From contig CM060731.1 of NCBI GenBank assembly GCA_030704615.1, forward strand, positions 5,580,001-5,644,000: 64,000 bases of DNA, read 5' to 3'. The DNA comes from Takakia lepidozioides (Eukaryota > Plantae > Bryophyta). A program made the position numbers and the translations under genes. Positions 660 through 58,395 of the stretch are shown piece after piece (within the stretch, counting starts at the first letter, position 1; every line of letters starts with the position of its first letter). The notes beneath the pieces were generated by a model. That model ran no database searches. It was not told where the DNA came from and saw only the letters and a list, made by a program, of their open reading frames with translations.

Positions 660-2300
660 CACTACTAGGGTTTGTAATGAAGAGCTAGAATGCAAGTCCT
701 TAACTTCTATGCTTCTACTCAAGCAAAAATATGGTCTCTAGGTGGTCATAAGAGGCATCTTGTTGCTCCCTTCTACCCCAATGTGCAACCAAGAGTGGTC
801 CAACTCAACTTGCAAGTCATTGTCCACCAAATCAATCCCCCTTCTAGTCCTTGGGATTTGATTGCAAACTACCATATCTCCATTGCCGATCAATCATGCA
901 TTTGTCTCATCATCACTTGACAATTGCTCCAAATCAACACAAATTATCTCAATGTGTAGGAGCAATGCTTGTCACTTACAATAATGCTCCCAAGCAATCC
1001 GCCTTGGATCCCACTCTCACGCCATATGCCTCATTTGGGGTCTTGCACCAATCCATCATCCATGTGCTCCCCGTGGTCATTTGAATGCATGTTTCATGAC
1101 CTCTTGGCCTATGTGTTGCTCTCCTTCATCATAACATGAATCAACACCTCTCCACTTCACACACAAATGGATCTCAAAGGCCTTCACCTCTTGCTAGTTC
1201 AAGAGCTCCCCTTCTCAAACTTGAACTTACAAACTCAAGCGAGCATGCTCCACACATGCACCACTTGCTTGGTCAACTATTCACCACAAAGCTCGCACTA
1301 CCAAGAGCATGAATAGCCAAGTATTGCCTCCCCCTCTTGTCACATTACATAGTTAGGGTGAAGCTATGCATACATTGAATGATGATTTCCCTTCAAGGAT
1401 TTCCCACCACATGTTCTCCAAGCCCTTCCAATGGCACCCTAAGCTTGGCTCCACACCACCATGATTGGAAGATTTCTTCACATGCTCCCTTTCAAAACCT
1501 CTTGAGCTTCTTAGTGCTCTCCAAGTGCTTGCCCTTGTTGTCTTCAAGCCCAAGCATATATAGCTCCTTGGCTTCTCTTCCACAACATCCACACTTTGAA
1601 CTTGCTTAACCCTAGCTTGATAGTGAAATGAGCACTAACAAGCCTTTAGTCACTCTCCACAAGCCATGGCGCACACCATCGACTCCATAATGCATACAAA
1701 GGATTCTCAAACCCTAGAATCCATGCTTCCACACACACAAGACTTCCTCCTTACAATCTTTGCAAAATCTTGTGACTCAAGAGCTTTCTTCTCAAGCTCT
1801 CCAACTCCTTGGTGCATGCAATACTCGAGCACCTTTCCTTGCAACCCCTTGCAAGCCTTGTGATACAAGAGCTAAATTCTTCTAGCTCTCAACCTCTTTA
1901 AAATACAAGTGCAAAACTAATCCTTACACTCCGCACTCACAAGCATAAGGTGATCTTCTTGTAGTAATAATGGAAGTGAACACACAATGGAAACACTCCA
2001 CTCATGAATCCACTCAATCACATAAACTAAGTCAAGCCAAGGGCACCTTTGCTAAAGGAATCCACCCTACAAAGCCCTCACCACACTCCCTCTCAATACC
2101 TAGAGCTATGGAGGTGGGAGAGGCTCATGGAGGCTCAACTACAAGAAGATGAGCCTCCTCAACACTCACAAGGGGAAAACCTATCTCCATGTCTCAAGTG
2201 AGGCTCGACACCTCACTTGGCATGTGAGACCAAATGAAGTCCCAACACACAAAATATAAATATAAATATCTAAAATGTCCTAGTTAACTAGAAGTAGGTA
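660..2300 (-). mobile_element. Degenerate LTR-retrotransposon-like internal region and start of 5' LTR
   Basis: Minus strand reads ...GGGACTTCA-TT-TGGTCTCACATGCCAAG (~2216-2243), resembling an LTR CA end plus a degenerate tRNA-Met PBS (TGGTATCAGAGCC). Downstream sequence is stop-riddled, purine-rich and gag-like. No clear pol motifs seen. Confidence 0.4.
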
Positions 2301-2309
2301 ATTCTAGAT

Positions 2310-2840
2310 AACCATGACTAAAACCATGACATTTCTCCTCTATATTGATTTCAAAAATGCTTTCGGATCCCTAGACCACCCCCGCCTGTTGGCCATAATG
2401 GCGGACCTATGATACCCTATAGATGTTATTCAATTTATTGGCAACATTTACACCAATAGTACCACCGAATACTCCGGATCATACTATGGCTCCACCCCCC
2501 CTATCCCTATACTATGCGGTACCATTCAAGGGGACACACTGAGCCCCTACCTCTTTATCATCTTCCTTGAACCCTTGTTACGTTGGCTTGCCCGGGGTAA
2601 CCTTGGATACCAATACAAAACATCTTCTAGCGAAATTTTCGCAGCAGCTTACGCTGACGACCTTGCTATTCTTGCACACAAACCCCAACATCTCAACCGA
2701 TAGGAAACAAACTATCTCGCTTCAACCAGTGGGCGGGTATGGAGCTAAACCTCCGCAAATGCGCGGTCACTGCTGCCACACATCAAAGTAAATTCACAAA
2801 ATCCACGATGCCATCACACTGTAATCTCCACATACATTAC
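2310..2840 (+). pseudogene. LINE reverse transcriptase fragment (domains 3-6)
   Basis: Translation FLLYIDFKNAFGSLDHPRLLAIMADL*YP...GTIQGDTLSPYLFIIFLEPLLRWL...AAYADDLAIL; in-frame stop and frameshift. Confidence 0.9.
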
Positions 2841-4111
2841 CACTACTACGTTTAGGGGGGGTTACCGACGCCATGACCCTGGGCGCGCCGGATGCGCTGA
2901 CCCCCCTGTGACTGCAGCGTTGCACAGGCGCCCGGCTCGGGACTTGTGACGTCGGGGCGTCGTAACGCCTGTGCTCGGACGACGTTGTGGCATCTTGCGA
3001 TGTCATGCCGTCGCCGGAAAGGGGCCTGACCCCATTCCCCCGCCAACACACTGGGGGGGTTGCGACGCCCTCGGGATACTGCGACGGCGGGGAATCGCAA
3101 TGCCTGAAAAAAAAAAAAAAAAAAAAAAAAAATCCGTTTTTTTTTTTTTTTTTTTTCCTTGCGATTCCCCGCCGTCGCAGGAGCCCGCGGCCGTCGCAAA
3201 TGCGTTGCTGGGGCTGGGGCTGCGGCGCTACGATTCCCCGGCGTCCTGGGGGCGTCGCGGAAAATTGATTTTGGGAGTAGATTGTAGAGCATAATGGGCT
3301 TGGCATCCTCAGACTATAGCCATTGTCCAACAATAAGTTGCAATGCAGTTTTGCAAAACTTAGGCCATTGATAGATATTTGTTCTTGAAGAACTCTGGGG
3401 ACAAGTCTCGGTGCAAGTTCCAGCTGTGAGAGTTCCTGTAGAGTACGCATAATCTGCAACATAATGATATGATTGAGATAGTGGTAGTCACTAGGAGCTA
3501 ACTCTTGATATGTATATATATACTTGGACTGCTTTTGTGATACATAGATGTATTGTAGATTTGTTGGTTAGTGTGCAGTGTTTTAGAAATGTTATAATGT
3601 GGATATATGTGGTTCAAATATGCATTGTCTACTATATGTAGAACAATGCATGAACTGCCATTGGACAAAACCGGAGTCAATGGTCAACGCTGAGTCAATG
3701 GTCAACTAGTTTTTGAAATTCAAAATTCAAATTCAAATTCAAATTCAAAATTTTTCCCATCTAAATTCAAATGTATCCCCCTACTGTGATGTCTGGGGGT
3801 TGCATTTACGACCCCCGGACATCCCTAACGCGACGTCGCAGTTTTTTTTTTTATAAATTTTATGCCCGGGCGTCGCAAGTCGCGCCGGCGCCGCGACTAG
3901 GGGGTCCCGAGGGGTTTGCGATTCCCCGACGACGCTAATTAGCGACGTTCCGGGAGTGACGTCGTTGCGACGTTTGTGTGACTTCCTGACGTCGCAAAAT
4001 GCCCCCGGCGCGCCGTAGAGTAATTCCGTCGCTAATCGCGGCGGTTGGAGGTCGCTGGGGCATCGCTAAACCCCCCCCCCCCCCCCTCCCCCCCTCTAAA
4101 ACGTAGTAGTG
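2841..4111. mobile_element. Non-autonomous CACTA (EnSpm) DNA transposon
   Basis: TIRs CACTACTACGTTT... / ...AAACGTAGTAGTG; 3-bp TSD TAC (2838-2840 / 4112-4114); many TGCGACG/CGTCGCA subterminal repeats; removing it restores the LINE ORF (..HIHY-QQKPFPFLG..). Confidence 0.95.
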
Positions 4112-5239
4112 TACCAACAAAAACCCTTTCCTTTCCTAGGCCCGGATGAACCCTATACTTATCTAGGCATACAACTGGTTCCTTCTCACACTTGGCATAT
4201 ACAAAAAAGCACCACACTTTCCAAATTAGCCAACAAAAGCACAACCCTACTCAAATCCCCGGTCTCCATCCGCCCCAAACTAGCTATAATCCAAAAAGTC
4301 CTAACTCCACAAGTCCAATACGCCTTTCACGCAGCTCCCTTCTCCCTTCCTGACATCAAACAACTCGACAAAAAGATTATCCAACTCATCAAACGAATCT
4401 GTGGACTACCCACTAGCACCCCGAATGTCCTCACTGAGCTTCCCCAAGATAGCTATGGAATCGGATCTAGCCCTCTAATTATTTCATATGCCCGCACCCT
4501 AGGCTCTCAACTTCAAGAAGCCCTCAACAACCCTTGTCGCCTAGGGCTAATTTTTAGAGGGCTCCTTAAACACCTGACCGCTAAATATAATGGATTATAC
4601 TCCCTCCCCACCCTCCATCCCCAATCCTGCCTCCACTCCCCAACCGCCCGTACACTGTTTATCCTACGTCAAATGAAGATTCGCATACAAACTGACTTAC
4701 TAGGCTACCCAAACACTACTTCACTACTTGAACGTGTCTGGCTCACCAGCCCATTTCTCCCACAAGTTGAAACCTCACACCCACGACAAAAGCAACTCAT
4801 CCTTGCCTACTTCAAAGCTCGTCATATTCTAACCTCACCCAACTCACCACAACCACCGGTGTTCGGCTATTAACTCCCAGTCAATTTACCTTGAAACACT
4901 CCCGTGCTACTATCAAAACATGTAGATACCTGATATACCTTCGCTCCCTCTTCTGTCATCCAACTGCCTCTTGTACTCTTAACTGTGACTTCCCGTGCCC
5001 ACTCTTCCCACATAACCAACAAGACCTCCTCCCTGAGTTTAGATCAGCCCCAGCTAACTCAATACTCCAGTGGATCAAAGCCTCTCATCACTCTCATGGG
5101 CGTCCCCCTCCAGACACCCCCCTGTCTCCTCCCCCCCCACAATCCCGTTACTCCTCAATGTCAACTCACCCCCTCTAGCTCCCCACTCCCCACTTCCCCG
5201 CTTAACCTGAGCCTACACAACTCTGACCACCCCGAGGCC

Positions 5240-7812: not shown

Positions 7813-10112
7813 AAGGGGGCAATAGCCGTAAGGCGAAGTGGCTCTTAGTTACGCCGGTTTAGGCCAGAGTCCTCTCTCTCTATATATATATATGTATGCT
7901 TACCATGTTAGCAACAAGTGAATGTTTACTTGTGCAATTTTTGTTAGTATCCTAAAACTCATTATGACGTTGTGAATATAAATTTTGGTATTTAATGTTG
8001 AATGTAAGTGTAGAGTGTGGAATCAAAGAGACATAACCGACTGTGGAGGAAAAGAGCAAGGTATCCTTTGATAAAACCGGGCTGTATAACCTTTCTAATA
8101 AGATGTTGAGATAACCACCTTCGCCTCATAACCTCATGTGCCATGCTGCCAAAGACCCGTAACCGCAGGTTCTCAGAAAAATCCATAATGGTAAAGAACC
8201 ACCTCCTCAGGATCTTTCAAATGCCTCGGAACCGACTGTTCTTTGTTTACATAAATAACCGCCCAACAGTGGTGCCAACACCCCTCGCTCCAACCCGCCC
8301 ACCACCCAGCGGGACTCACACTTTGCCAAGTGAGAGGCTCAATTGGTCCAGGCCTTGGACAACGAGGCAGACCTTCTGCCCGATTGCTTTCGAACCCTAT
8401 GCATAAAAGCAACCATCCATGCTAGTCGGCCATGCTCCACCGACGTCGCTAACTTGGCCGGGAGGGCCGGGACATGGAAGTTGGCCCTAATAACCTGACT
8501 CACCCTCCGATTTTCAGGTCACCAAGGGTTTGACAACTTTTTTTATGTCCCATTGTCCTGCACCAGTCGCGGACCCGCTAACACGTGGAGACCGGTACAT
8601 AGCGGGATGAGCTCTGTTCCACACCCACTAGGGCACCTGTTGTCACGTCCTGGTGACCTGCTCGCCAAACCCCACCTCACCTCACAAGGAGGGGTCCATT
8701 TCCCTAACCCCTACAGGTGAGGTCCAGTTAGGCTAACTTAATGGGGTACATGTCCTTAGCAGACGTTTGTGCTCACCCCCCTAAAATATACTAAGCAGCA
8801 TTGAGATTAATTTACCCTTTATAATTACCCCTGGTAGTACCCACAGTAAAGGATAAAGGATAAAGTTTCTTTAATGTCGTTTAGAGTATAAAAACAAGGC
8901 AACCTTACCCTCGTGGTATATGATGTGGCACCCTGAAAGTAACTCTCTTCAAAAAATAATATATACCCTTACCCAGAGGGTAACAAGTTTCGAATAAAAA
9001 TGATACCCTTATTACCTTGTAAGTTTGTCTCTAGACCCTTACCGAGGGTAAGCAAAATCAATATACACTCCCAACAGTCGCCCGTTGTTTTGTTGTTGTA
9101 AGATATTGCAGAGATATTGTCTATTTTCACCTGCTGCAAGTTTCGATACCATGTAAGTTCCATTTTCCATGCTCTTGGCTATGCTCTTGGCTAGGAATAG
9201 TGGCCGGGAATTCTAATGCTTCAGTCTTAAGATGCAAATCTGTATAAAAACAATTCAAGCCTAATTCACGACAGTACTTCCAGCACCCGAATACAGTGAC
9301 GGTTTTTGGTGTCACTTACAAACCCAAGGTGGGACCATTCAAGAGTCCCTTTTTTCTTCTGTCTGCTCCAGGAGACCTTCTAGAAAATCACCGTCCCTTA
9401 ACTTTAATCTATGTTCATTTTATGCCGAGATTGTCTTGACTCAACATATGAGTACTTATTCCAAAACGAACTCAGGTCGAAGTCTACCAACTCTGCGCTG
9501 GAAACATATCTTTCACCTACAGAGCCTTTCACTCTGCACACCATGAAAGCGGTTTGAGTGTTAGGACTAAATAAGCCAACACAGACCTGTGCGCCCTCCC
9601 ATTCCCCCCCCATTATATATATCCTCCATTGCTAATCGCTGTTGCCAGCTGAAGATATGCAGGTTCCAGTAAACACCAAGTGGGTTAACTTAAAGACCCA
9701 TGGAAGATACTTTATGCTAATCTGGAAAACCACGGAAGTATCCCAAGCGCGAGAGAGAGACAAGTCAGTGAATGAAACTGCAAAAGAGAGAGAGAGAGAG
9801 CGTCCAGCATTTGAAAGATCGACCGTTGGTCGCCGTTACGTCCTTACTCTGGAACACCGACAGTTTTGGGCGTTTCCCATCCACTTTCATCTCCAACATT
9901 CGTTTATTTGTCGACTCATCCATGACGGGGTGTTGGATGAAACGCATCCACACCCTCCTACTGGAACTTGTGGTAGGTAATATCGCCGCCGAAATGCTCC
10001 AATTATGAATTAATGTCAACAAGCATGAATATAAATATCTTCCTTTCATTATACGGACGTGGATTTGGATTCGTACCACGGCTTAAGCAGAATATAGCGA
10101 GTAATAATAGTC

Positions 10113-14603: not shown

Positions 14604-14822
14604 CGATGATACCATGGACAGTGAAGGACCTCGTGGAGAGGGGTATGATTCTGAATGTCGAAAGTGTCGAATATGAGAGCCTGGAGTCACCTACTGAGGA
14701 AGAGAGGAAAAACGATGATACAGTGGAGACAGTGAAGGACCTCGTGGAGAGGGGTATGATTCCGAATGTCGAAAGTATCGAAAAGGAGAGCCTGGAGTCA
14801 CCTACTGAGGAAGAGAGGAAAA
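14604..14822 (+). repeat. ~110-bp tandem duplication in an orphan ORF
   Basis: Two copies of GATGATAC..ACAGTGAAGGACCTCGTGGAGAGGGGTATGATT...GAGGAAGAGAGGAAAA. Confidence 0.85.
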
Positions 14823-15589
14823 GGAAGAGAGGAGAGAAACTAGAGGCGCATGATATGCAAGGGGAAAATATGGCAAAGGAAACTTCATGGGGCAAAAAGC
14901 ATCGCAGTCTAGCATGTAGTATACTTTGAATACTTTAGGGGGATTACACAGAAGCAACGGAGCTTCGGTCCCAGAGAATTTCAAGGCAAAGTGAAAGACA
15001 CCATCTTTTGGCGAGTATTATTAATAGAAAGTGACGAGGGAAGCAGTGTTCCCCAATGATACTCCAAATGTCACCTCAAGTGGATGCCGCGGGCTACCTA
15101 CATGTAAATTTGCTAAAGCGTGTTCTAATCACTGCATCTTCTCTTGAGCTTGTTGGGCTGAGCCTGGTGGACTTGGCAACATTCACAATACGTCCGAATT
15201 GGGACGAGTTTGGAATTTGGTATAATCTACCAAAGCTTTTCTTTGAAGGTGTGTGGGATCCACCACTAGTTATTTCTGGAGTGTGAAGTCGGCGTCGGTT
15301 TGCACTCGCTGCTTGTCAAACCTGCCCGGACTGTGTCCGCGATAATCTTGCATCTGTGCTCTCTCCCAGCTACCAGGATCCTCTTTCAGAATCTGTGAAG
15401 CCTGCCAACTGAGCCGCTCCCAATCTGGGATTACCCACAGATTCCTGTATGCTATGCCTGGTGAGCTTACCCAGTCCTCTGTGTGTGTGTGTTTGGTATG
15501 TGAGCGCGCGCGCGCACAAGAGAGAGAGATCGTAGAACAGGGGGGATGCAAAGGGGGAGCAGTCCAAGTGGAGGAAAAGCAGGTATGGC

Positions 15590-18500
15590 TTAGAATTTGA
15601 TGCACTCCAGAGGCTCGCCAGTGATTTCATCAACCCTTACTATCATGGTTCTGTTGCAAGAAATGACATCTTGCCCGAGCTTGGCCCCCGCAGACTTGAG
15701 ACCTTTCATAGTGGTGGGCTGGTTGAAGAGATTGAGCACTGGCAGTTTTGACGCAGGTGGTAATTTCTTCTGCGGTAAAAGCAAGTGGAAATCCTCCTGC
15801 AACCATGCATTTCGTTTGAGAATGAAAATCCGTAAAGCAGCACCAGTGAGAACCGCAACCTCAGACTTTTGGACCCTTTCTTCAACTCGTAAGTACTCAT
15901 GACTTGCGTCCCCCGATCCTGGCAACAAAGTGAACCTCTTTCCCCAGCGCACTCACACAAGGATCTGTACAAAAGAGCTGCGTTTTGTGAAGAGGATCAC
16001 TTTCCTACTTACATCCTGAGCGGCACCACCCATGAAGGCTCCCTAAAGGCTCTCTGTTTCGTTCTCTATCCTCATTCCATAATGGGTGGAATTTCGGGAC
16101 TCCCTTCGGTCGGACAAGTGCTTAAAATCCATGGTATGAACTATTCTCGTGTATCATAGTTAGCATAGGAAACCGGAGGACAAGCCCGAGTTAGTTTTTT
16201 TCAAGTGGGAGCTGGTTAAAGAAAGAGACCTGCAGAAGCGGGACCTCAAAGTCCTCCTTCTTGTGTTTGACAATGTTGTCAGCTGCGTTAATGTGCGCGC
16301 CCGGTTCCATGTGGTTGGTAGAGAAGCTGGTTTGGTCGGGGAAGTTGGGGTACAGGGTGACATAGCCCCGTAGATACATCACATCTATCAAAAATTTCTT
16401 CCAGGATGCCTGCCAGTGCTCAATCAGAGGTAAGTCCATTGCTTTCACAACAGGTGAACTGACAAGCTAGATACTCTGCTTCTGAAAATCTATCTACTCT
16501 ATCACCTGTTCAACAAAAATGTGAAGAGATGATTTAACAGTCACTTCTCCTGCAGGAATCTATGATTTATCACAGATCTAAATTGCAAAACTTGTTACTG
16601 GAACGGATCACCTCCCTCTAAACAGACACATCACAGAGGCAACGAACAGCATAATCATAACAAAAGAATGCTGAATGCCACTGACCTGCCACCCATTTGT
16701 CCGCGAGCGAGGGATCTGTACAGGGTTAGCTTTGGCATCCTCAGTGTAACGCATGCCCATGTATTTGTAGAACTCACGCCACCGTTGCGGGAAGAAGAGG
16801 GCTCCCCAGCTGCAGGGCAGCTGATGTAGATATGGCGTATTGGGGTGCACCATTTTGAAGAAATCAGTTGCATTCCAACGGGGCCTTTCCTTCACAACTT
16901 CAATCACTCTGGGAGTGTACAGAGCTATGGCGTTAAGCTCTGGCAAGTGCACAGTGGGATCATAATGGTAGGCCAGTAATGCATACTTTAGCCACATGTA
17001 GTAGAAGGGAGACACCTCGATGTCATCTTCCAACAACAGCCCAAAGTCATCGTCTGATGCTGGGTACCTGCAATGTGCTGGTAATTAGTGTATGAGATTC
17101 AAAAGGGAGGATCAACTCGTCTACTACCAGCGCTGGAAAACATTAGACCTGGGGCAGCTCAATATTATGTGAACTCAAAAATTTGGAGAATGGAGTAGAT
17201 GGTATGGAGATTTCAAGGTAAACTTGGATTGTCACGCAGTGAAGGTATAGGTACAGGAGCTACACTGGAACTTTGCAATGCACAAGACACAGAGCAGGGA
17301 GACAGAGAGAGAATCCACCTACAAACTCCAAAGGCAAGTTTGAGCGAAATGTGGAGAAAGTGATGGTAATAAAAGTGCTCAAAAGAGAAAAGTACCAGCT
17401 CTCGCTGACCGCTCTTATGAGACCTCCCTGGATGATTCGTCGGCGTACTATCTTGGGGCCGTGTGGCCATTCGAATTCATTGATGACGCGGAGAGTTTCG
17501 GCATCAACCTTGCTGTCCATGTTGAAGGAGATGGCGATGACATCTCCCAAGTAGTGTGCATCCACCAGCGATTTTAACAGGCGGTGGAGAGATCCAGCCC
17601 GATTTTGGGTGATGATGTTGATAGAGATTCTCATCTTGTTCCAAACTGCTTCACCGAACGCCTAAAGTCAGTACAACGCACCACAGGCTTGGTCCATTTA
17701 TCTGGTGGCCAGTTTAAATGAATCTAGCCTTCGCAGATTACTGTACAACATTAGTCCCAACAATGTACTCACACTGAAAGATAACATGCTGAGAAGGGCA
17801 GAGGGAGGATTGTGAGAAGTGAGGAGAAGGGGTGGCCTTACCGCGCAAGGCAGCGGACTTGACATCCGACATCCAGAGGGCATATGGAATGGCTGATTGT
17901 GGAAGGTGCACTAGCGTGGCATTGCCAGGAGTCACGGCCAGGGTTAGCCCCTCGCGCACATTGGCAGCCAGATCATTCACTGTGATTACAAGGGCAGGAG
18001 AGTGAATCCGCATCAATCCGCGCATTGCCACAAATACTTCCTGAATGATGGAGGAGTCCACATTGCCTTTGGCCACAGACCCAACCTGGCAACGCAACAC
18101 AGTGTTCAAACTAAGACTTGCGGTATGTACATGTCCAGAGTCCCAGCCAGTTCAAAGATTTTCATCGAACTACCCCTTTCTTCCTTTCTTACCTCCAAAT
18201 CAAAGATCTTGAATCGGCGGTCGTGGCAGGAAGCAGCAATCCAGCCCAGAATAGCAGCAGCTTCCTCGCAAGGACAGTGTGTGCCCCCACTCACAACCAC
18301 AAACGCTTTCTTCCCAGGTGTGCTCCGAAATTTGAGAATGAGAGGGGCGAGGGCTTTGACCTCATCCAGCGAGTGGGCATAGAATAGAACATCGGATTGC
18401 TGGGGATACATGGTGGCCCACTGTGTCACATAGCCCCTTGACATTGTCCTCCACCATTGGTCATCACGAATCTGAAAGAGGAAAGGATGTCTTTGAATAG

Positions 18501-21109: not shown

Positions 21110-24039
21110 GAAAAACACTCAAAGATCTGCCCCACCTCTCCTCCCCCTGCACTGCTTCCACATCTCCTCCCTCCCCCGCCCCTCCCTCCCCTCCTCTCTC
21201 TCCTTCCTCTCTCTCTCCCCTCTCTTCTGTTTCATCAAAGATGTACCTTCAGGACTCCCAGATCTGTAAACAAGCCTCAGATCTGACCCCCCATCTCTTA
21301 ATTGGCCCTTCTCTTCTCTTCTCTTCTCTTCACTCTCCTCTACTCTCTTGTCTAGTCTCGTCTCCCTCTCTCTCGCAGAATCAAGCAGCTGCTTTTGTCG
21401 GTGCTTCGCACGTACACTTCTTGTCTTTGCAAATCGCACGCGCAGCTGCCACCGGTTGCCTCGACCCCGAGCCTTAGCCTCGGAAAAACCCTAGCCAGAT
21501 CTTTCCACGCCGCTCTGGCGTTCAAATCCACAACCGCAAGCGTTCCACGAGTGTTTGCTCACGTTTGCGCTATGACACGTCGGAACGGGCATGTGGCTCC
21601 AACATTCATTGCTCCCGATGCTTTTATTTGGCCCCGATATTAAGTCCAGAATTTGTGTTGAAAGCCCACAGAATGAAGAAAAACTTTAAAAAATTAACAA
21701 TTGTATGATTTTAATGATCCGTGAATGTTGAGGGGAGGGGGCATGATTGGTACGTTGTGCGCTAAAGTAAGGGTCCCCAGGAATGGGGGGGTCGACCAGT
21801 ACCGCGACTTTATTTGTTTGGTCTACGCGCCGAGGAACCGTCGTGCGGTCGTCCGCGGCAACGACGTGTGAAGTCGTGGCCACGCGAGCACGTCTCTCGT
21901 CGCCCGTGCGGCACACCGCGCAGTCTGATAGCTGCCCCGGCAAGAACGGCCCGCGCTGACCAGCGTTAGGCAGCCCTGCGTTCTTGTCGCCTTGCCATGC
22001 GCGCTCTGTCGTCTCCTTCTCATCTGCGCTGGGGCTCAAGGATGCCTGCTGTCTGCAGTCCCATCGCAGCCCGGAGCACTAGAAAGTGACGGCTTGGGAG
22101 TGAATCAGGCAGCGCTGGAGAACTTATGCAGGGAATGTAGTGTGGTAGGAGTTTCTGATGTCGCAGAAAAATCTGAAGGAGCTGATTGAGTAGGAGAAGG
22201 GGGTGCTCATGCTCCAGTTCCTCACCCTCCCGTCAACCAAAATAGCTGCTTTTGCTTGTGTAGGTTGAGACGGTTCTGGGTCTGTAGGACTGGTGACCAT
22301 AGATCTATGTTTTAGTAACTGGCTTGTGCAGGTTGTTGTCACTCTCGAGTTGTCGGTCGAGTTTCCTAACTCCTTGCCGAGCTTTCTGTATTTGAATGGT
22401 CGCAGAAAGAATACAGTCAAACCTGGATAAATGTTACCTCTTTTTTCTGTTATATCATCCTAAATGTTATGGTTTTCTTACTCTGTAAAAATATACACTA
22501 AGAATGACAAGAAGAGTGTTATTTGTTATTTGTTATTGAATACCTACTCTCCTCTTTGTTAAGACCCCTCTGTAATTGTTACGTTCAATAAAATAATAAA
22601 AATAAAATAAATATGGTACTAGTATTCAAATTCAAATTCATTCTGGAAATGGGCATTTGAACTATTGAAATGGCCATGAGAACCCTAACCGCCGTCTGTT
22701 AGGGTTTGGGGGGCCTCCAAGGAACTTGAGAACCTCCTAGTAGGGTATTGCGAATGTTTACGGGAACAGAGAACAGTAGGTAACACTTCAGTGCTACTGA
22801 GATACTATGATCATACGTTTGAAGAAGAGAGGAAGCATTCGATGCTACCATTGTACATGTCGGCAATGTCTTGTTATGAGATGGATCGAGAATCCAACAA
22901 GAAGCTATGTTTGTAGATTAAATGTGAGGTTCCACATTGGTCTAGATTTTGCCGTGAGGCCAAAAGGTTGAATTGCAAGTGTTTGAATAGATTTAGAATC
23001 CTCCTTGTTTGGTTATGTAGTTGTAGATTTAAACTCGGTGAAGTATCAAATCTTGAGAGCAACGAGGAGGTCGACGTCAACACTGATGAGAGCAGCGATG
23101 AGATTGAGTTTGATAGTGGACATTACGGACATAGTGGATATAGAGACATTACGTCATATTTTCTGCCCTCTCTCTAGATGTTATCTTGCATCTGAAGGAC
23201 CTGTTTTAATAATGTTAAATTTCTAGTTATTATGTTATGAAATTTCAACCTGTTTTTACTGTTATTTGATATAACTGCCTAATTATAGAGTTCCTACTCT
23301 TGGAGCATAACAATTATCCAGGTTTGCCTGCACAGTGGGTGCGAGGGTTTAAGGTTTATACTGCCTAAGGAGATCCTGTTGGTTTTATTAAGTTTTTCCA
23401 CGTGCATTGCTGCCATATCGAATGTAAGGGTGGCCGGTACTGGGATAGACTGGGGGTCAGAGCGCGGTGGAAAGCTTGTGATTAATACTGAGATAGCTGT
23501 GCGTGTGGGTGTGAGAAAGAGAGAGCTCAATCGTAAACGTGAAAGTGCTAATGATGGAAGAAAATTCAGCACGCCCATCTGGGCTAACCAGTTGGGTGGC
23601 TCACATCAGAAAGCTTTGTGCCTCTTAAGTCGAGAGAAAACGCTCTCGGATTTTCCTGCAGGTACAACTAAGAAGGGGTTTCTTTTGAGGCTAAGAGCCT
23701 TGCCCTCTTTAGGAAGAGCGCATTGTAAGACCAATAAAGCCCCTCACGTTGTTTCGGGGTCATTTTGGAACTCCTAGTAGATAATTGCCCACTACCATGA
23801 CTGGACTGCAATTCCGAAAAATGTATACCTATCATCATGATCATGATCATCATGTTCTTGGTCTAGGAGGGAGGTCCTAGCTCAAAGCTCATGAGAAGTT
23901 TGTTTGAGTACCAAAGTAGAGTAACTCAGCGTAGTTCAGCCACATTACACAGTGCTACAATGGAAGTAGTTTAAGCAATGCTTATAAGTCCATCATAGCA
24001 TATCAGTATCTTTTGTGTAGACATTTCAGCTATCACTTC

Positions 24040-45988: not shown

Positions 45989-46226
45989 ACCCATCCACCA
46001 AAATTTGGACCATTTCTCAATATTTGCATGGCAGCCTTGCCAATCTTCTCTGCATCGTTCCCATTATCAGAAATGACCTGGAATTTGCTCCGAACATATT
46101 ATAAACATGCTGGTTATAGACCCTTAATTACAGACTGACTTTTTTAAAGTTACCTTGCTTCAGTGCTTCATTTTTTCATTTCTCCAAATAGCTTAGGAGG
46201 CCACATGTAGGTTCTATCTAGCACTA

Positions 46227-46747
46227 TGTGAAGTCTGGATTCCTACCACCTGTTTTTTGGATTGGATGGACAGAGTATGACTACGTTTGGATGAACTGTT
46301 GATGGGGATGAAGACCGGATGTGGCGGGGCTGACCGTTACGTAAGATCAGCTGGCGCAGCTGGGTCCCAATAAATTAGGGTTGTCTGTAGTTAACAACTA
46401 GTTTAGGATTAGGATAGATGAGCTGGCATCTTTGAGTGGTCTTGCTAGGAAGACATCTGGATGACCAATGTAAAGAGCCCATGTGGTTCAGATTAGATTA
46501 CGTTTCTAATACTACTTAAGCCTATGATTAGAGGCAAAGAAGGTGGTGGATTTGATCTCAAGTGGTCTACGGTGTACTTATGTTGCAACTTGAGTGTGCA
46601 TGATCTACTGGATAAAAGTGTCTTGGCAAGTGTGAACGTTTGTGTCAGATTCCATCCTATCTAGCAAGTCCCTGTCCTACTGTGCTACAATCCCCTTGTT
46701 GGTAATTCCCGGACAGAAAGGGGAATATATCCCCGGCCCCGGAATCT
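46227..46747 (+). repeat. 5' LTR
   Basis: Starts TGTGAAG; colinear with 57866-58387; followed directly by the PBS. Confidence 0.9.
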
Positions 46748-46936
46748 TGGTGGAGATGGGGGGCATTGTAATTCGTTGTTGTTGACGGATGAACCTAATC
46801 ATTTTTGGGTAACTGTTTTTGGCAAAGAGGAATAAGGTATTGTAGCCAGGCGCAATGGTGGCGCTCTCTGCTCTTCGTTTTTGCCAAATCGTTGCTAACT
46901 TGTGCAAGCTCACGAAGCGTGTGTGTGCAGCAAGCC

Positions 46937-48245: not shown

Positions 48246-49108
48246 GACCAAGCCTGCAGCCCCTTACGCCAGCTTGGATGATTTACTTCTTGTCTCTCCA
48301 CCTTCCTCGCAACCTCTTCATGCTCCTCCTGTCACTGACCCCATGGCCTTGTGACACCTTTTGGATTTTCCCTATGTCCTTGTTGACTTACTTGATGCTT
48401 GGGACCTAGCTCAGTTTGATGTTCATTAATTTCTTGCTACGGTACTTAGTGTGATTGGCAGTTTGGCAAATCTGCAATTAGGTTTGACTCTGGTCCTTCC
48501 CTATGCCTTGTTCATTTTTCTCTAGCTTCTGCCATGCCTTGTTTATCCAGACCAAGGGACTGAGCAGTGCTTATAACTTCATAGGCAGCCACTGAAAGGA
48601 TGACAGGATTAATGAAGGGAAGAAAACGGGGGCGGCCACTTTCCATTTCACGGACGTGACTTCCACGTGAGCGTGAGCGCGAGCGCGTACGCTCACGCGA
48701 TGGTGACGTGGCGTGAGCGCAGGCTCACACCAATTGATGTGGCGTGAGCGTGAGGCCGACATATCCTTATCCTGCTGACGTGGCAGTCGTCTGAATGACG
48801 TGACATTTGGACAACTTGCCAGATGTCATGTCATCAGAAACATATAGCACCTATAGCCGAGGGGCCTATAGCCGTGGCATTCATTCATCCAAAACACCAA
48901 AAATAAAAATGCAGGAACGACTTGTGAAAGCATTTGCATCCATTCCATTTATTTTCGAACGACTACACACAAGAAAGAAATGGCACACATTGCACAACAT
49001 AATTGGAGGTTGCACTGGCACCAAATATACGAAGGGACATCAAGTTCACATTTCAATTCTTGTAAAATCCAGTAATGGAAATTGCAGATGACCAAAGTGA
49101 AGAGGATG

Positions 49109-50372
49109 TTATGTGCTCCTATCCCGCTGCATAAGTGTATTCACCTCGTTGAAACTCATGGTGGCCTGGTGAATGAAGATGTCGCGTCTGGGATCACAAA
49201 CCATTCTGTTCAAGAAGATAAAATACAGATTCTTGCAGGGTATAAATTTTCCTGTCTTTCCCAAACTTTTTGTAAGCATGCCAACAAAATCAGGACAGTT
49301 GCAGTTGTGGAAGTTTGAAACTGTGATGTCGTACAATCAGTCATGCATAGCGGATGTGGAGGTCATCATAGTGTAAATTCGTCTATACCCGGGATGTGAA
49401 ACTTCCGTAGTGCCTGTAACACGACCTTGAAGCATTCGAGCGGATTCCACCTTGCCGAAGTGTTCGGCAGTCGGAGGGAAACGACGAACCAACTTCCCAT
49501 TTTGTTTTGTTGGCCATGCATCAGCGTTGGGTGGTGGCACTCGAGAACTTACTGAAGTAGAAGCACATGCATGTATAGAGGGGGCTCGCTGAAGGGAGAA
49601 GCCTGCCTCCTCCAACATGGCAATCTCCTGAGTTGTGAGATGTGTCCCCACCTTCACAGGCCAAATGCTTGGTGGAGGAGGCTCCATGATCACCGATGGT
49701 CACACAGTCCCACGCACGCACCTACCACAGTCGTCAAGGCAGAACCAGAATTAGTGGTTCTTTGCCTCTGCTTGCCCGTAAGGCTGGAAAAAACCAGTGA
49801 AGGTCGGAGCCGGAGTGCGGACCTTGCCTCTGGAGATGGAGGGCTTGCACTTCTCACGATTGGTGGCTCTGATTGCCGTGCACTTCACTCGAGACCCAGC
49901 ACTGGTGCATTCTATGTGCCAGACTTCGTCAGGGCACATGGATTCCACCACATTGGGGAGGACGTTCGACTCCTGCACCCCATTGCATTGACAGTGGGAG
50001 ATGCCTGGGTCTGGCTTTGTAAGAAGTTTCTCCGCACTGGACATTCCGGAAACAAATCTCTGATGCAATGGAACACGCGGAGTGGAGAAGTAGTCCCTGT
50101 CCGGCCTGTGCAAGTCCGCATCCGAACCAGGATGGGTGTTCAATTTCCGTTTACAAGAGCCGAATCTCTCCTCGCCCTCCAGATGCGGAACTCTGGACAC
50201 CAGAGGAGCTCCCTCCACACACATGTTGACAGCCTTGGCTATCTTGTTGAGATCCCCCGATCTTCTTGTAGCTTGCAACATCAACTCAGACTTGTCGGGA
50301 CCATTGCCACCAACGCCACCCCGCAAGAACTCCCGGTATCCTGTTTGTTGCTGTAGAGCTCGTATTTGATCA
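49109..50372 (-). pseudogene. SWIM zinc-finger protein (transposase C-terminal half or accessory protein)
   Basis: One frame with stops: QIRALQQQTGYREFLRGGVGGNGPDKSEL..PHLEGEERFGSCKRKL..FWFC..WPVKVGTHLT..CNCPDF...FIPCK(N)LYFIF (SWIM CxC..CxH with H changed to N). Confidence 0.75.
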
Positions 50373-51971
50373 ACTTCCCGTCGATACCGTAAACATCTCT
50401 TTCGAGGAAGACAGTGCCAATCTGGTACTCGAAACGTGTTGCTAGGAGATGTTTCTCCGCAATTGCAAAACCATCGTCATCGGCATCCTTCAAGAAATGG
50501 ACAGGTTTCTCGACAGAGTAAAACTCCGCTTCAGAGGAACCCATGCTGGTGCACGAGAAATTTTGAGCCACTGGAAGCCTCAAAGTGCATAGTCCCATGA
50601 CTTGTGTGTGGATTCTTGTTACAAACGACAGTGGGGATTACATTTCTACGTCGTTAGAGTTCGCACCGATACTAACGAGGCCATTCTGTCATCGTCTTCT
50701 ATGTCCCAAACCGTTAATATGGAAGGTTGAGCCTAAACCCAGATATTTGAAAAGCTGACATATCGTTAAAGAGTCTTCCAAAAACAGTTGTTAAGCAGTT
50801 ATGTGCCTGTACCGACCCAAGTGAAAAGATGGCGGAGACGAAAGTATTGGAATCCAATGTCATCCCAACTTGTTGAGGCACGTGGAACCCGACAATGCAA
50901 TATTGAGTGCAGGGTTGCAGAAAATTCGGCGGAGAACCAATGATACGTGGCATGTTGTGCCACATATGAAGATTTCGAACCGGGAAAAACCGGCAAAAGC
51001 TAGCCTAATAACTCATCCATCCAAATTGAATCTATCACCAAGCAATAGTACTACTAATGGCCATACCTAACTAGTTCAAGACGGCGGCCACTGCCGAAAA
51101 GACAAATGTGCCTTTGCGAGGTGGACACGTATGCCGTGAACACATGCATAACGAGATCGAGGCCCCGGCTGGTACTAATCGCACGACGTCTCGCAGCCTA
51201 GTAGTTCGTGATTTTCAAACTGGAGAGTAGCAGGAGACTGAGTTCCCAGCAAGAGAGTGGAAGGCGTAGAAGATAGTCTTCCTTTTCCACTTCAGCGAGA
51301 GACAAGAAGAAGGCGAGAGAGAGAATGAGAGGTCGCAAGCTCAACATGACGCTGAAGGAGATAACAGAGGAGAGCACGGCCCTAGAAACAGAGCACATGG
51401 CGGAGGAGGACCAGCCACGCGGAGAAGCTGGTGAACGAGGGGAGGAAACAACAACATAGGGCGACCCTGACGACATGGACACAGAGGAGCCCGACACCCT
51501 TTTGAGGAAAGGGAAGAAGGCTGTGCAGATGGGGAGGACGGCTGCTGTTGTAGCTCAAGCAGAGGCATCTGGGAGTGCTCCTCCTAAAGGACCGAAGGTG
51601 ATTCTCTCCTTTCTCTTGATTGTTGGCAGTGGAGAAGGCATGAAAATTGCGTTCAACACCCACGCAGTTTTTATGCCATCTTTACTTCTGTTTTCTGTGT
51701 CATCATTCTGTGTTAGCATTGTCGGATTTGTATGAGGGCTCATAGAAGTGTAGACGACAAAGAAAACAGGGTGCTCTCAATTCAGACATGTCCTTTTGCT
51801 GGACCTTTTATTCTGCACATAGTTGTCCACATTTTCTGAACCGCAGAGACCGAAGGATGAGAGAAGGGCAATGCGAGCATCCCCAAAAATTGCTTGTTCT
51901 CACACTGTCACACCCTGCGCACTTCTCTCACTGTATTATCAAGGGAGGTGAATGAAGGGGAGAAAGAGAAC

Positions 51972-52770
51972 CCCCTCAAAATTGAGTGCGTTGACGCACG
52001 CAATTTCTAAGGGTTCTCTCAATGCCATTCTCTCATCCTTCGGTCTCTGCTTTCCCTAATCTATGAAGAAAGGTCCGAGAAGTCTGAGCAGTGAGAGACG
52101 TCTTTCAAACTTCAAAAATTGAATGCGTTTACGGAGCTCTTTTATGAGTGAAGAAATTGGGTGCGTTGACGCACTCAGTTCTAGGCAGGAAAGGAGGGAG
52201 ATCCCAAATATATATATATATATTGGGATAAGTTATACGGGGAAATAAACTCAAACCACCACGGTGGTAATGACAAGAAATTCTGGTTGGCCCTTCAACA
52301 TCTGTACAAGCCGAAAAATTGTCAGCAAGTACAAGCACTGAGGACCCCTGTGGTGACTTCAACGGCTGACATTGTCAACACCTTTGAAACCCACTACAGT
52401 ACACTTGGCAGAAATTCTAGTTCTAGCAGCGAGGGGTTTTTTGAAGAATGGAATGACACAGTAGAAAGAACTGTGTCTATGATTCAAGACAGCCCTGATG
52501 AACTGGAGTATATTTCAAGGGTTATAATGCTCCCATTAGTTCCTCTGAGATTGCGGAAGCAATTGAGCATCTAAACAGATACAAAGCTGGTGGCCCTGAT
52601 GGCATTGTCAATGAGCTTATCAAGCATGGTGGTGACCCTATAATAGAGGCCCTTGTTCTTCTCTTTAACCTTATACGGAGGACTGAAATTACCCCCTTTC
52701 GCTGGCGGCAGGGGGTCATTGTCAATTTATATAAGAAAGGTGACAGAGAAGAGCCGGGTAACTATCGGGG

Positions 52771-52810
<40 letters not shown>

Positions 52811-53293
52811 CACTTGTGGCCCTCCAAAATTGAGTGCGTTGACGCACACAGTTTCAGAGGGCCACAAACGCCGCTGTGGTTCGTCCCCCTTGAGTCATGC
52901 TTTTGGTTTTGGAGGGTAGTTCATGTTTGCTGCTTGTCTAGACACGCTTACTTCCATTGGGCAAATCAAAACCCTTCACAACTGAGTGCGTTGACGCGCT
53001 CAATTTCAGAGGGTCTGGTACCTGATGTTTTGTCTGTCCTTCCATTGAGATTAGCTTCCGGTTTTGGGGTGGGGGGGGGATTCCTCTTTTGGTGACTGTA
53101 TGGACATGCCTGTTGGCAGCCAAGAATGGTGGAACGGTGTCAACAGCTTATACTTGACGAAGGGGGACTGTTCGGGACAAATGGTAATCCTCCACTCCGA
53201 TAAAGGGTAGCCTTCTTCTCTTGTCTGCTTCATTTCATTTTTCTGTTCACCCATCCAGAATTGAGTACATCAACGCACTCAATTTTGAAGGGG
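51972..53293. mobile_element. TIR element (MITE-like) with palindromic GTGCGTTGACGCAC repeats
   Basis: ~35-bp TIR CCCC(T)TCAAAATTGAGTGCGTTGA at both ends; motif repeated internally at ~52160, 52830, 52985. Confidence 0.65.
52223..52774 (+). mobile_element. Internal LINE RT fragment (APE-type clade) flanked by (TA)n
   Basis: EIAEAIEHLNRYKAGGPDGIVNELIKHGG..LFNLI..WRQGVIVNLYKKGDREEPGNYRGI; TA microsatellites at 52209-52222 and 52775-52808. Confidence 0.85.
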
Positions 53294-53364
53294 TGAAGTT
53301 GCACTGTTCTTTTGCCCTTGTGTGTGCATTCGCTCATTTATGCTTCATGTTGTCTTCAATGCAG

Positions 53365-53880
53365 ACCCGCCTTTTTGAAGCCATCTGTCTCGTCAGGGTG
53401 CACCCTTCTTCGACTCTTGCTGCAGTGAAGGAGTTCAGGCTTCATGGGAGAGGTTGTTTCATGAACAATTACGTGGATTCGAATGTCTGTTTGAGAAAGT
53501 CGAATGGAACACCATGGAGAGGGGCCAAGGAGAAGAGTCCAACTTTATTCAAACTGTTATTGAGACACGTTCCCATCCGGGGGCGTGCATCATCGACCTG
53601 ACTCTTGGAACAAGTTTGACATCTCTCCTTCTGTGGTCTTTTTTCCCTTAATACACAATTTGTAACATCTTAGTAACACAACTGTGTCTTGCAGGAGCTT
53701 TGTACCATGCTTGCAAGATAGCGGGCCGGCATTTGTTGGGTATGGAAGGGGATGCAGCCATTTTTACTGAGCCTCCAAGAGTTGCAAGGGCCAATGCCTG
53801 CCGCCAAAGTGCAGGAGGCTGTAGTGCATGTCGATATCAATGAGGGAGACGACAATGACCTCGACGACGATTTCACGTGA
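53365..53880 (+). pseudogene. Beta-class N4C/N6A DNA methyltransferase-like C-terminal domain (2 exons, frameshifted)
   Basis: With one frameshift and an intron at ~53614-53694: PWRGAKEKS.NFIQTVIETRSHPGACIIDLTLGT|xALYHACKIAGRHLLGMEGDAAIF, compared with the N6_N4_Mtase pattern K...L...I...S.PG..VLD.F.GSG....A...GR...G.E.D. Confidence 0.7.
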
Positions 53881-55119
53881 GTAAGTTTGTTTTGCGTTCG
53901 CTTCCCAGTTATAGCATGTGCCCCCCCCACCCCTATGCCTTTCACATTAGCTAATGCAATACATGTAATTTGGGTGGCAGGATATTGGAAGCTATTCCTT
54001 TGCACGACGTCTCTGTTCATGCTCAGCCTCATATGCTCAAGGGCAACACACAAATGCCTAACATTGGTTATGGGTCAAACAAGAAGACAAAGCATGTGCT
54101 GCCTAGTGGTTTCGTCAATTTTTGGTGCACAATGTGAAAGACCTAGAACTCCTCCTCATGCACAACCGGTAGCCAAATTCATCTTCTAATATGTTGTTAC
54201 AACTAATGGGTATGCTTACAACTAATGAATAAGCTTGAAAATTTCAGTGCTCAGATTGTACCTCACTGGCAAGGCGACTAGGTCGCATTTTTAGTCCAGT
54301 GCCAGTTTAAGGTGGTGATCTGGTGTGTTGCAGGAAGTATGGTGCTGAAATGGCTCACAATGTATCGACATTGAAGAGGAAAACAAAAGTGGAGCATGCT
54401 GCACAGTGGAATGTTGCAGTAACCAATGGGAGAAAATAAAAAAATCAAAGATTTGTCTCACATCTACTGTGTTGTCTTATTCTACGTTACTTTCATCAGT
54501 CTACCTTTCCCCAAATGGCAGACATCATGGATTAAATCTTATCATGTGCTTCATGAGGGATTTTCTCCAATTTGTGATGTTTGTGCAAACGACATTGATT
54601 GTTGTGCTTGGTTTAGATAAATGTTAGAATGACATCCTCATTCAACATTCATCCACTCTCATACATCCACATTCATCCACAATTTTTCATCCATATTCAT
54701 CCATATTCGGAGCGTGCTGACTCTCATTCATCCTCATTAATTCATCCACAACCATTCTTCTATATTCAGTCTCTGCAAACACAGTCATTCAACAACATTC
54801 AGTATAAGCTCTCTTCTGCATTTTGCCTCGTCGCCCACATATGGTTCCCTATGTGCCGAATGCGCAAGTCCGCGGCTATAGGCACCCTTCTGCCTATTCG
54901 GTCCACGGTTATAGGTCCGTATCTATGGAAATGACGTGGCTTCACGTGACGTGGCGTCAACCACGCTGGCAAGGTCTGCTGACGTGGTGTCAGACCCGTG
55001 AGCCAACGTGACAATAATTGATGACATGGCGTGAGCCTGGCACATGCTCACGCTCACACAGAAGCATCCCCCCCATTTCACCTCCTCTAACCGCTGTTGT
55101 GTGGCCATAAAGGTTATAA

Positions 55120-56475: not shown

Positions 56476-57630
56476 CACTACAGCAAATAGCAGAGGTTTG
56501 TGACGTCAGCCGTACCCCCACGCCCCGCGCGGCGCTGAGACCGCGACGCCAAGCCCGCGACATTTTTTTGCGACGCCCCGGTGTTGCAATCCCCCGCTAC
56601 GACACCATTGCGACGCCCAATCGTCGCAAGGTGCCATGAAGGGGGAAAGAGGGCCCTCGCTGCGACGGATTTTTTTTCTTGCGATGCCCCGGCGTCGCAA
56701 ATCCAATAAATAAATAAATAAAAATTGGATGTTGCGACGCCGAGCGTCATTGAGGGCGCCCCAACGCCTCTGCGACGTCAGGGCGTCGCAACAACATCAC
56801 CACAGTGGGAGTTTGTTTTTTTTTTTTTTTTGGGCTTTGCGGCTTTCAACTTCACAAAAGCGTCGTTGGGGGCGCCCCGTGCTGGGGCGCCCAACGCTGC
56901 GACGCCAGGGGGTCGCCACAGGGGGTCGCAATGGTGTTGTAGTCAGCTTAGGTCATCACAAGGACGTCGCTTGGGGCACCTGGCGGTGGGGGGTTGCAAC
57001 AATGGCGACGACGCTGGGGCTGGGGTTAGGGTTAGGCACTAAGGCTGTGGAGGTTGCAACTCCCTGACGTCACAAGAGGGACTCCCTTAGAAGGAACTTG
57101 AAGGAAATCTTCATGTATATATATATATATATATTGCTTTTGTGATACATAGATGTAGCGTAGGTGTGTTGGTTAGTCTGTAGTGTCTTAGAAATGTTAT
57201 AACGTGGAGGTCTTAAGTTCAAGTATGCATTGTATGATATATGTAGAACAATGAACATATCGCCATTAGACAGAACCGGAGTCAATGGTCAACAAGTTTT
57301 TGAAATTCAAATTTTCCCGCCTAAATTCAAATGTACCCCTTCTTGACGTCGCATTTTGCGACCCCCGGACGGTGCTAATTCTGCATTGCAGAATAGGGGT
57401 TTTTTTTTTTTTGACGTCCGGGCGTCGCAAATCACGGTTTCGCCTATTTGCGACCCCCATTGGTCGTAAATTTGCGACGTTTTTTTGGCGACACCTTTGC
57501 AATGGGGCTTGCGACGTCCGGGCGTCGCAAATTTGGTTTTCCCCTCTGCCCAAAAAAGGTTGTTTTATGACGCCGTGGCGTGGCTGCAGTATGGCCGCGG
57601 TGTTGAAAATCCCCCCCTTTTCTTGTAGTG
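56476..57630. mobile_element. Non-autonomous CACTA element, related to 2841-4111
   Basis: CACTACA...TGTAGTG termini, 3-bp TSD GAT, TGCGACG subterminal repeats; 57110-57370 is homologous to 3505-3820. Confidence 0.93.
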
Positions 57631-57865
57631 GATAGACATCTCTTTTTCTTTCGTGATAGCATTGGCATCACCTTGTAACATATTTGGGGTTTTTCTAATC
57701 TTTTGTCCTTCGCCCACCTTACAGGGCAAGGTTTTGTTCACTTGGTTCGTTCATCCTTTGCATGATCGGGTGCCTAGTTTTGTCTAGTTTTTGCTATAGT
57801 TCCCTTCCTGTTATTTCTCAGCTCGCAGGAGCTCGCTTGTTTACTGGGGCAGCATGCCGCACATA

Positions 57866-58395
57866 TGTGAAGCCTCGATTCCTACCACCTGTTTTTTGGA
57901 TTGGATGGATAGAATATGACTGTGTTTGGATGAACTGTTGTTGTGGATGAAGACCGGATGTGGCGGGGCTGACCGTTACGTAAGATCAGCTGGCGCAGTT
58001 GGGTCTCATTAAATTAGGGTTGTCTGTAATTAACAGCTAGTTTAGGATTAGGATAGATGAATTGACGTCTTTGAGTGGTCTTGCTAGGAAGACATCTGGA
58101 TGACCAATGTAAAGAGCCCATGTCGTTCGTATTAGATTACGTTTCTAATACTACTTAAGCATGTGATCAGAGGCAAAGAGGGTGGTGGATTTGATCTCAA
58201 GTGGTCTACGGTGTACTTGTGTTGCAACTTGAGTGTGCATGATCTGCTGGATGAAAGTGTCTTGGCAAGTGTGAACGGTTGTGTCAGATTCCATCCTATC
58301 TAACAAGTCCCTGTCCTACTGCGCTACAACCCTCTTGTTGGTAATTCCCGGATAGAAAGGGGAATATATCCCCAGCCCCGGAATCTTGCCTCCCA
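57866..58395 (+). repeat. 3' LTR
   Basis: TGTGAAG...GGAATCTTGCCTCCCA, followed by ACCA. Confidence 0.88.

Follow-up and report, generated by a model that had tools for sequence, protein, structure and literature searches.

A probable decayed Mutator-like element from a family that pairs its transposase with a ParB- and methyltransferase-like gene

Transposons of algae can carry accessory genes with ParB-like or DNA methyltransferase domains. In Ectocarpus, the element Sola1-1_Ec32 encodes a 1104-residue protein with ParB-like and N4C/N6A DNA methyltransferase domains (PMC12477816, Genome Biology 2025), and a preprint on Bostrychia describes accessory genes of the PF01555-SET and ParB-2OG (2-oxoglutarate) types that occur in Plavaka, Mutator, Zisupton and Fanzor elements and have inverted-repeat arrays next to them (bioRxiv 10.1101/2025.02.11.637652). 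Common accessory genes cause mislabelling between Mutator-like elements (MULEs) and Plavaka (bioRxiv 10.1101/2025.02.11.637652), and the published proposal is that the ParB-methylase protein binds and modifies its own element (PMC12477816; bioRxiv 10.1101/2025.02.11.637652). A literature search returned no paper on such ParB-methyltransferase elements in bryophytes or other land plants. Here, we describe a transposon in a 64-kb stretch of Takakia lepidozioides DNA (contig CM060731.1; hereafter the window, meaning the whole stretch analysed), which is eukaryotic and plant-like. The element proper spans 48652-55072 (6421 bp) and is very likely a decayed, non-autonomous deletion derivative of a MULE whose family bears a ParB/methyltransferase-like gene.

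The boundaries of the element are defined by a target site duplication (TSD), terminal inverted repeats (TIRs) and alignment to relatives. A TSD of 8 to 11 bp is a hallmark of Mutator (PMC6446971), and the window copy has one of 9 bp: the perfect direct repeat CCATTTCAC adjoins both termini, at 48643-48651 and, directly abutting the right terminus, at 55073-55081 (both on the plus strand), and occurs nowhere else on either strand of the 64 kb. An earlier note on this DNA, which had not seen a TSD of MULE length, was therefore wrong on this point. The left TIR (27 nt, 48652-48678, plus strand) and the reverse complement of the right TIR (27 nt, 55046-55072, minus strand, opening with GGGGGATGCTTCTGTGTGAGC) are identical at 19 of 27 positions without gaps, a score reached by 4 of 3000 random pairs, and GTGAGCGTGAGC stands at offset 15 from each of these ends. 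The right terminus is also identical from its first base, at 17 of 21 positions in register, to the terminus of two related elements, L015 and L016, and none of 200,000 random 21-mers from the window reaches 17. This cross-family match places the right end at 55072, or at 55071 with a 10-bp TSD containing one mismatch, a run of C making the position ambiguous.

Both ends have subterminal motif zones (48652-48880 on the plus strand, with the motifs GACGTGGC, GTGAGC and CCTATAGCCG, and 54866-55072 on the minus strand). The CpG-rich, mirrored motifs that the earlier note had pointed out here are real and non-random, with four TGACGTGGCGTGAGC-like matches against 0.02 expected and CCTATAGCCGYGG found twice on the plus strand at the left (198 and 213 nt from the end) and twice on the minus strand at the right (157 and 190 nt). 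L015 and L016, members of one 90% cluster from a single assembly and 95.6% alike along the element, give the same kind of boundary: their similarity ceases abruptly at both sides, each is flanked by a perfect 10-bp TSD (AGAGAGTTGT in L015 and CTCCAAGCCA in L016), and their termini read GGGGAATGCTATTATGTGAGC... followed by GTGAGC-type heptamer repeats. The terminus is thus kept across families, and the resulting consensus, GGGGRATGC...GTGAGC (GGGGRATGCTNNTNTGTGAGC), can be used with the TSD of 9 to 10 bp to mine and delimit all copies of the family.

The minus-strand gene of the element encodes the transposase. Its open piece at the C-terminal end (49754-50476, minus strand) was searched against a set of 1.8 billion proteins and recovered 176 relatives, the closest of which, P0001, is 66% identical at the protein level and lies on a 9-kb contig, L001; P0002 and P0013 yielded short contigs or no DNA. 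A metagenome scan with the transposase piece of the window, in a collection that appears to lack the source organism, found no relative. The relative families considered here are L001, L004 (a truncated element without usable termini), L005, L006 and L015/L016, where L015 and L016 pair up with L017 and L018, respectively. Alignment to L001 shows that the window gene consists of two parts joined at 50365-50366. At the DNA level, 49110-50365 aligns to L001 8613-7373 with 74% identity and 50366-50481 to L001 5335-5220 with 70%; in translation, 62 N-terminal residues (50547-50362) and ≈420 C-terminal residues match on the same strand of L001, with 50% identity over 62 residues between the N-terminal remnant (50366-50547) and L001 5154-5339. 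The ≈2.0 kb missing at the junction corresponds to L001 5336-7372, which contains a Cys/His-rich GCM/WRKY-like zinc-finger region and the DDE core. What had been read as two divergent genes with their 5' ends lost near 50372 is instead an internal deletion in a single minus-strand gene; as the earlier note had it, this copy lacks the catalytic core, which was lost in that deletion. Loose ends are found at 50362 and 50372, where contigs from the sequencing runs of the source genome continue past both positions and one enters the part of the transposase that in P0001 comes before the junction; full-length copies therefore exist.

The C-terminal part (49110-50365, minus strand) contains three in-frame stops and a SWIM motif, CxC...C at 49214-49333. 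This motif, also seen earlier, is present in degenerate form: it matches PF04434 with an E of 0.15, and CKH has become CKN with loss of the histidine. In P0001 the same finger scores 21.2 bits, above the PF04434 cut-off of 19.6. A C-terminal SWIM finger is common, though not universal, in MULEs.

Against assignment to Mutator, Pfam models PF10551, PF00872 and others give no match at E up to 1 in 51 aligned family members or in single open reading frames (ORFs); compared with described Mutator-like elements, the window family is too divergent for detection by PF10551, PF00872 or PF03108. Because Pfam recognises nothing in the core, the L001 core, an ORF with at least 224 relatives, was folded with its alignment. 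The model has a mean pLDDT (predicted local distance difference test) of 69, with values of 80 to 98 over residues 160-370, and a Foldseek search of the PDB returns the ISCth4 transposase of the IS256 family first (probability 0.99-1.0, E 6e-4). The nearest ESM Atlas models are PF10551 MULE clusters or SWIM-type proteins that share no common Pfam family (TM 0.39-0.58), and a language-model search retrieves MULE clusters at 0.95. These structural matches offer independent support for an IS256/Mutator placement. In the core alignment, D192, D258, C287 and H290 are nearly invariant, and the downstream exon opens with CNLAE; ≈370 residues separate the catalytic E from the SWIM finger. Together, these residues and the CNLAE motif make up the arrangement D..D..CxxH..E, which is the Mutator signature. 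A DDE core, which the earlier note had proposed to look for, is thus present in relatives such as L001 and is IS256/MULE-like. We file the family as Mutator-like, and no longer as unclassified, because of this signature, the IS256/MULE fold matches, the TSDs of 9 to 10 bp, the TIRs and the SWIM finger.

A second gene diverges from the transposase in all relatives with enough sequence. In L001, L004, L005, L006 and L015-L018 it is spliced and encodes a 135-residue block with VWDGNHR or VCDGNQR, which from its motifs looks ParB/Srx-like; Pfam and PDB sequence and profile searches with this exon of the relatives were negative, and the window copy retains no ParB motif. Further along this gene, L005, L006, L015/L017 and L016/L018 have methyltransferase-type motifs or exons, namely a β-strand with DIPEN or DIPK (NPPF in L005), PWRGxREKxP, PGDIVLDxxxSTG and GRHxVxxExDxxIF, and the sequence examined of L001 and L004 holds the ParB-like exon only. 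Each of the five relative families for which sufficient sequence exists (L001, L004, L005, L006 and L015/L016) has the transposase together with the second gene, and in L015 and L016 both lie inside a single TIR/TSD-bounded unit, so that the pairing of a SWIM protein with a methyltransferase-like gene in one element family, claimed earlier, is supported. In L006, the 3' half of the second gene is inverted-duplicated across the transposase (950-2394 versus 14700-15887, and 445-516 versus 21799-21870), with arms ≈83% alike and a Copia element inserted in the right arm. These arms may represent TIRs of great length with coding sequence in them, or else a second, nested copy; as simple TIRs the 1.4-kb arms were rejected, since they form a partial inverted duplication. 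The ends of L006 lie outside the sequence examined.

In the window, the plus-strand gene is preserved in fragments. A putative first exon at 51326-51597, with an acidic N-terminus and an in-frame stop at 51457, has no homology that we could find. The remnant of an amino-methyltransferase-like domain lies at 53364-53880, with the methyltransferase-like stretch itself at 53364-53768. It keeps HVVFNADPPF, with DPPF at 53364-53375 and a TGA immediately after; a deletion follows position 53466, where other genomic copies have extra sequence, and then a frameshift. Motif I, IIDLTLGT, occupies 53589-53612 and stands in one frame with the upstream DPPF, and an intron follows it. The last exon, at 53691-53877, shares 58% identity with L006 and 42% with L015, and is closed by a stop at 53878-53880. 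The order is the permuted one of β-class enzymes, in which motif IV, (D/N/S)PP(Y/F/W), precedes an FxGxG-like motif I: DPPF at 53364 comes before IIDLTLGT at 53589.

We searched and folded the second gene exon by exon. The motif I exon of a relative matches a single Pfam family, PF01555, below threshold (E 0.036). For the motif IV exon, the model is of low confidence (pLDDT 58), and its top 50 Foldseek matches are all S-adenosylmethionine (SAM) methyltransferases, including the adenine-N6 enzymes METTL3/14, MTA1 and M1.HpyAVI (E 3e-3 to 3e-2). A PDB profile search with this exon was negative, and a language-model search scored an uninformative 0.78. The methyltransferase exon of the window matched nothing in a PDB sequence search or a large protein search, Pfam on all open pieces of both genes gave only the weak SWIM match and L32e (see below), and tblastx of the plus-strand gene found nothing in L001, L004 or L005 and matched L006 and L015 in the last exon only. 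With moderate confidence, we read the domain as β-class amino-methyltransferase-like. Motif IV itself varies: in a sister clade, aligned as relatives of L017 9772-10206, it is a conserved DIPEN in 17 of 19 sequences, with DIPK in L006, which is also aligned there; the window's element has DPPF (53364) and L005 has NPPF (about 13-30). From these sequences, one motif IV clade may be catalytically dead or catalyse a different chemistry, and the split between DPPF/NPPF and DIPEN shows which subfamilies to test for activity. The suggestion of the earlier note that the element carries its own epigenetic writer is not supported for the window copy, in which the gene is a pseudogene fragment; the idea of a ParB-methyltransferase carried by a transposon was published for algae in 2025 (PMC12477816; bioRxiv 10.1101/2025.02.11.637652).

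The element also holds a captured fragment of a ribosomal protein L32 gene (54033-54439, plus strand). It consists of two pieces of exon separated by an intron (54167-54331) and has one frameshift. Three pieces match PF01655 (E 1e-8, 7e-4 and 5e-5) and together cover profile positions 32-108. The summed contig depth over this region, a rough guide, is ≈60 times single-copy and matches that of the remaining element, which makes it probable that many copies include the fragment. This fragment is evidence of host gene capture in the family and raises the question of whether the methyltransferase-like stretch is likewise a captured host piece, without a lasting link to the transposase, in a Pack-type chimera. 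The L32 fragment is truly captured, and what is left of the methyltransferase is in pieces and matched nothing when searched directly. However, in five different relative families the ParB-like exon and the transposase are arranged head-to-head, methyltransferase-type motifs or exons follow it in four (L005, L006, L015/L017 and L016/L018), and in two copies the whole unit lies within one TIR/TSD-bounded element. A purely Pack-type origin is rejected because the genes are linked in relatives, and we regard such a chimera as very improbable.

The setting of the element bears on a second alternative. A Ty3/Gypsy element encloses the insertion, with long terminal repeats (LTRs) of 530 bp at 46221-46749 and 57859-58388 that are 93.4% identical, and with RNase H-like and integrase-like reading frames on either side. 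The insertion within the Gypsy element and the TTATAA hexamer at both ends (48571-48576 and 55114-55119), described earlier, can be read in the sequence. On this basis, the earlier note had placed the ends of the transposon at the hexamers, with a TSD of 6, 4 or 2 bp, in a new or unclassified TIR superfamily encoding a SWIM protein and a methyltransferase. Such ends are suggested by the hexamer at both sides, next to which one further base pairs as in an inverted repeat (C at 48577 and G at 55113), and the failure of Pfam to recognise the transposase would suit a new superfamily. The terminal repeat beyond the hexamer is, however, at chance level: the score of the 40-mers inside TTATAA is reached by 772 of 3000 random 40-mer pairs from the window, and the weak TIRs described there depend on TTATAA itself because the hexamer is its own reverse complement. 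The left hexamer lies 76 bp outside the true terminus. Measured from the TTATAA ends, GTGAGCGTGAGC is out of register, at 96 versus 60 nt, and the subterminal motifs as a whole are more symmetric about 48652 and 55072. Further in stand the perfect 9-bp TSD and the cross-family terminus, the relatives have 10-bp TSDs, and the core folds like IS256/MULE transposases. The ends at 48652 and 55072 do not abut a palindromic AT-rich target of the kind used by piggyBac/Kolobok (TTAA), Tc1/mariner (TA) or PIF/Harbinger (TWA). The TTATAA-bounded superfamily is largely refuted by these results, and we give it hardly any credence; since the inner ends have an ordinary 9-bp Mutator TSD, no new kind of transposon is involved, and the failure of the claim keeps a false new class off the record.

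With the termini of the MULE set at 48652 and 55072, 66 bp at the left (48577-48642) and 32 bp at the right (55082-55113) remain between the TSD copies and the hexamers. Neither segment contains an open frame, a second copy was not found within the window, and the terminal repeat of the ≈107-bp outer piece is not above chance. When the Gypsy flanks are joined in silico with the MULE removed, all frames are broken with or without the outer piece, and the joined flanks therefore could not tell whether these 107 bp are Gypsy sequence. The matches listed for reads and contigs over one junction included neither loose ends at 55072-55119 nor an empty site, and the terminus of a second copy was not among them. 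Our guess leans slightly toward the outer 66 and 32 bp being Gypsy spacer, the two TTATAA hexamers then being coincidental; a small, older MITE-like (miniature inverted-repeat transposable element) insertion of ≈107 bp that later became the target of the MULE is the less probable of these two origins. The Gypsy pol region has stops and frameshifts that are independent of the insertion. Just inside the Gypsy 3' LTR, 57105-57293 is 81% identical over 189 bp to 3500-3688, in a LINE (long interspersed nuclear element) region near the start of the window.

Zisupton elements have TSDs of 8 bp, and Plavaka/EnSpm elements have TSDs of 2 to 3 bp with CACTA termini. Membership in the KDZ/Zisupton/Plavaka (CACTA-related) group, with SWIM-like fingers and red-algal ParB/methylase accessory genes, can be set aside with scarcely any reservation: the Bostrychia preprint reports exactly such misclassification through common accessory genes, and the great length of the transposase, with its unusually wide spacing of catalytic E and SWIM, also points that way, but the TSDs here are 9 to 10 bp, the termini begin GGGG/GAG and not CACTA, none of the 51 family members has a Pfam KDZ match, and the best structural matches are IS256 and MULE.

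In and around the second gene, the elements of this family contain arrays of palindromes. The window copy has five of 26 bp of the AATTGAGTGCGTTGACGCACTCAATT type, at 51980, 52155, 52828, 52980 and 53259 (span 51980-53284), with a degenerate copy at 52116; a motif count gives six matches at these five sites, the one at 51980 matching on both strands, against 0 expected. In L001, at least ten sites of TCAACCTTGCGTTGACGCAAGGTTGA share the core GCGTTGACGC with the window palindrome. The L001 palindromes lie at 893-3919, and a second array is found downstream of the transposase, at 8800-9055. L017 has GGGTTCGGCGCCGAACTC-type palindromes (3195-4699), and L006 has others. From these differences between L001 and the window, L017, and L006, each family has its own palindrome. 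Such family-specific palindromes fit a ParB/parS-like pairing, which they do not prove. Around the first palindrome of the window, 51843-52050 forms an inverted repeat of 54 nt whose arms are 83% complementary and stand 100 nt apart; it looks like a MITE or a long hairpin.

Full-length relatives carry two divergent genes. The first encodes a transposase that starts with an N-terminal region, followed by a GCM/WRKY-like zinc finger, the DDE core and a long C-terminal stretch that ends in SWIM; the second is spliced and has ParB-like and β-class amino-methyltransferase-like domains. We propose the following function for the second gene. In intact members, the ParB-like domain may bind the element's own palindromes and bring the methyltransferase-like domain to the element DNA, which might mark the element or shield it from host silencing. 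That intact DPPF/NPPF members encode an active ParB-guided N6-adenine or N4-cytosine methyltransferase that marks its own palindromes is at present a doubtful idea. If true, it would place an active transposon-borne amino-methylation writer in a land-plant lineage, with palindromes that change together with the ParB-like domain acting as a parS-like form of addressing. The window copy inserted with a 9-bp TSD, lost its zinc finger and DDE core in one 2.0-kb internal deletion, is without the ParB portion and some of the methyltransferase domain, acquired stop codons and a LINE fragment, and carries the L32 fragment as Pack-MULEs do. It would presumably be mobile only through transposase supplied in trans that recognises the TIRs and the GACGTGGC/GTGAGC/CCTATAGCCG motifs.

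The LINE-like fragment is a nested piece of a reverse transcriptase reading frame (GPDG...NYRGI) at 52224-52775 on the plus strand, placed between (TA)n tracts (52208-52809 with the tracts); its depth is the maximum of the stretch, ≈1000 times single-copy, and Pfam is silent on it. The element as a whole amounts to tens of copy-equivalents in the runs of the source organism. Single-copy contig joints that skip 372, 914, 1263 and 335 bp indicate other deletion derivatives in the source genome. The interval from the L32 fragment to the right subterminal zone contains, at 54646-54802, a run of six degenerate direct repeats of the CATTCATCCA type, with a 31-nt unit and 65 to 100% alike.

Among known systems, ISCth4 of the IS256 family (PDB 6xgx and 6xg8) resembles the family in the fold of its DDE core and differs in being prokaryotic, in an identity of 7 to 10%, and in having no SWIM, introns or second gene. 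Pack-MULEs are likewise non-autonomous MULEs with an intron-containing host gene fragment, here L32, inside the TIRs; unlike them, the window element retains remnants of both family genes, and its captured piece is only ≈400 bp. The ParB/methylase genes of algal transposons are similar in lying on the strand opposite the transposase, in encoding ParB-like and PF01555-type N6A/N4C methylase domains, and in having inverted-repeat arrays nearby. The red-algal PAG2/PAG3 genes of Plavaka and Mutator elements, in contrast, couple ParB with a 2OG oxygenase, and the methylase with SET. Ectocarpus Sola1-1_Ec32 comes closer with ParB and methylase in one gene, a likeness in domain make-up. The window family differs from the algal systems in that its carrier is a MULE and its host a land-plant-like genome, and if its methyltransferase were active, it would represent, in land plants, an equivalent of the accessory proteins reported from algae in 2025. 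Finally, the family shares with MULEs such as MuDR, Jittery, VANDAL and the domesticated FAR1/FHY3 the TSD of 8 to 11 bp, TIRs with subterminal repeats, a DDE core with D..D..CxxH..E and an IS256-like fold, a C-terminal SWIM and an N-terminal zinc-finger region, a second divergent gene (mudrB in MuDR and VANC in VANDAL) and the capture of host fragments seen in Pack-MULEs. It is set apart from them by the long stretch from E to SWIM and by a second gene that is ParB-like and amino-methyltransferase-like and accompanied by palindrome arrays. The element in the window is a decayed and otherwise ordinary representative of a kind that is interesting but already known.

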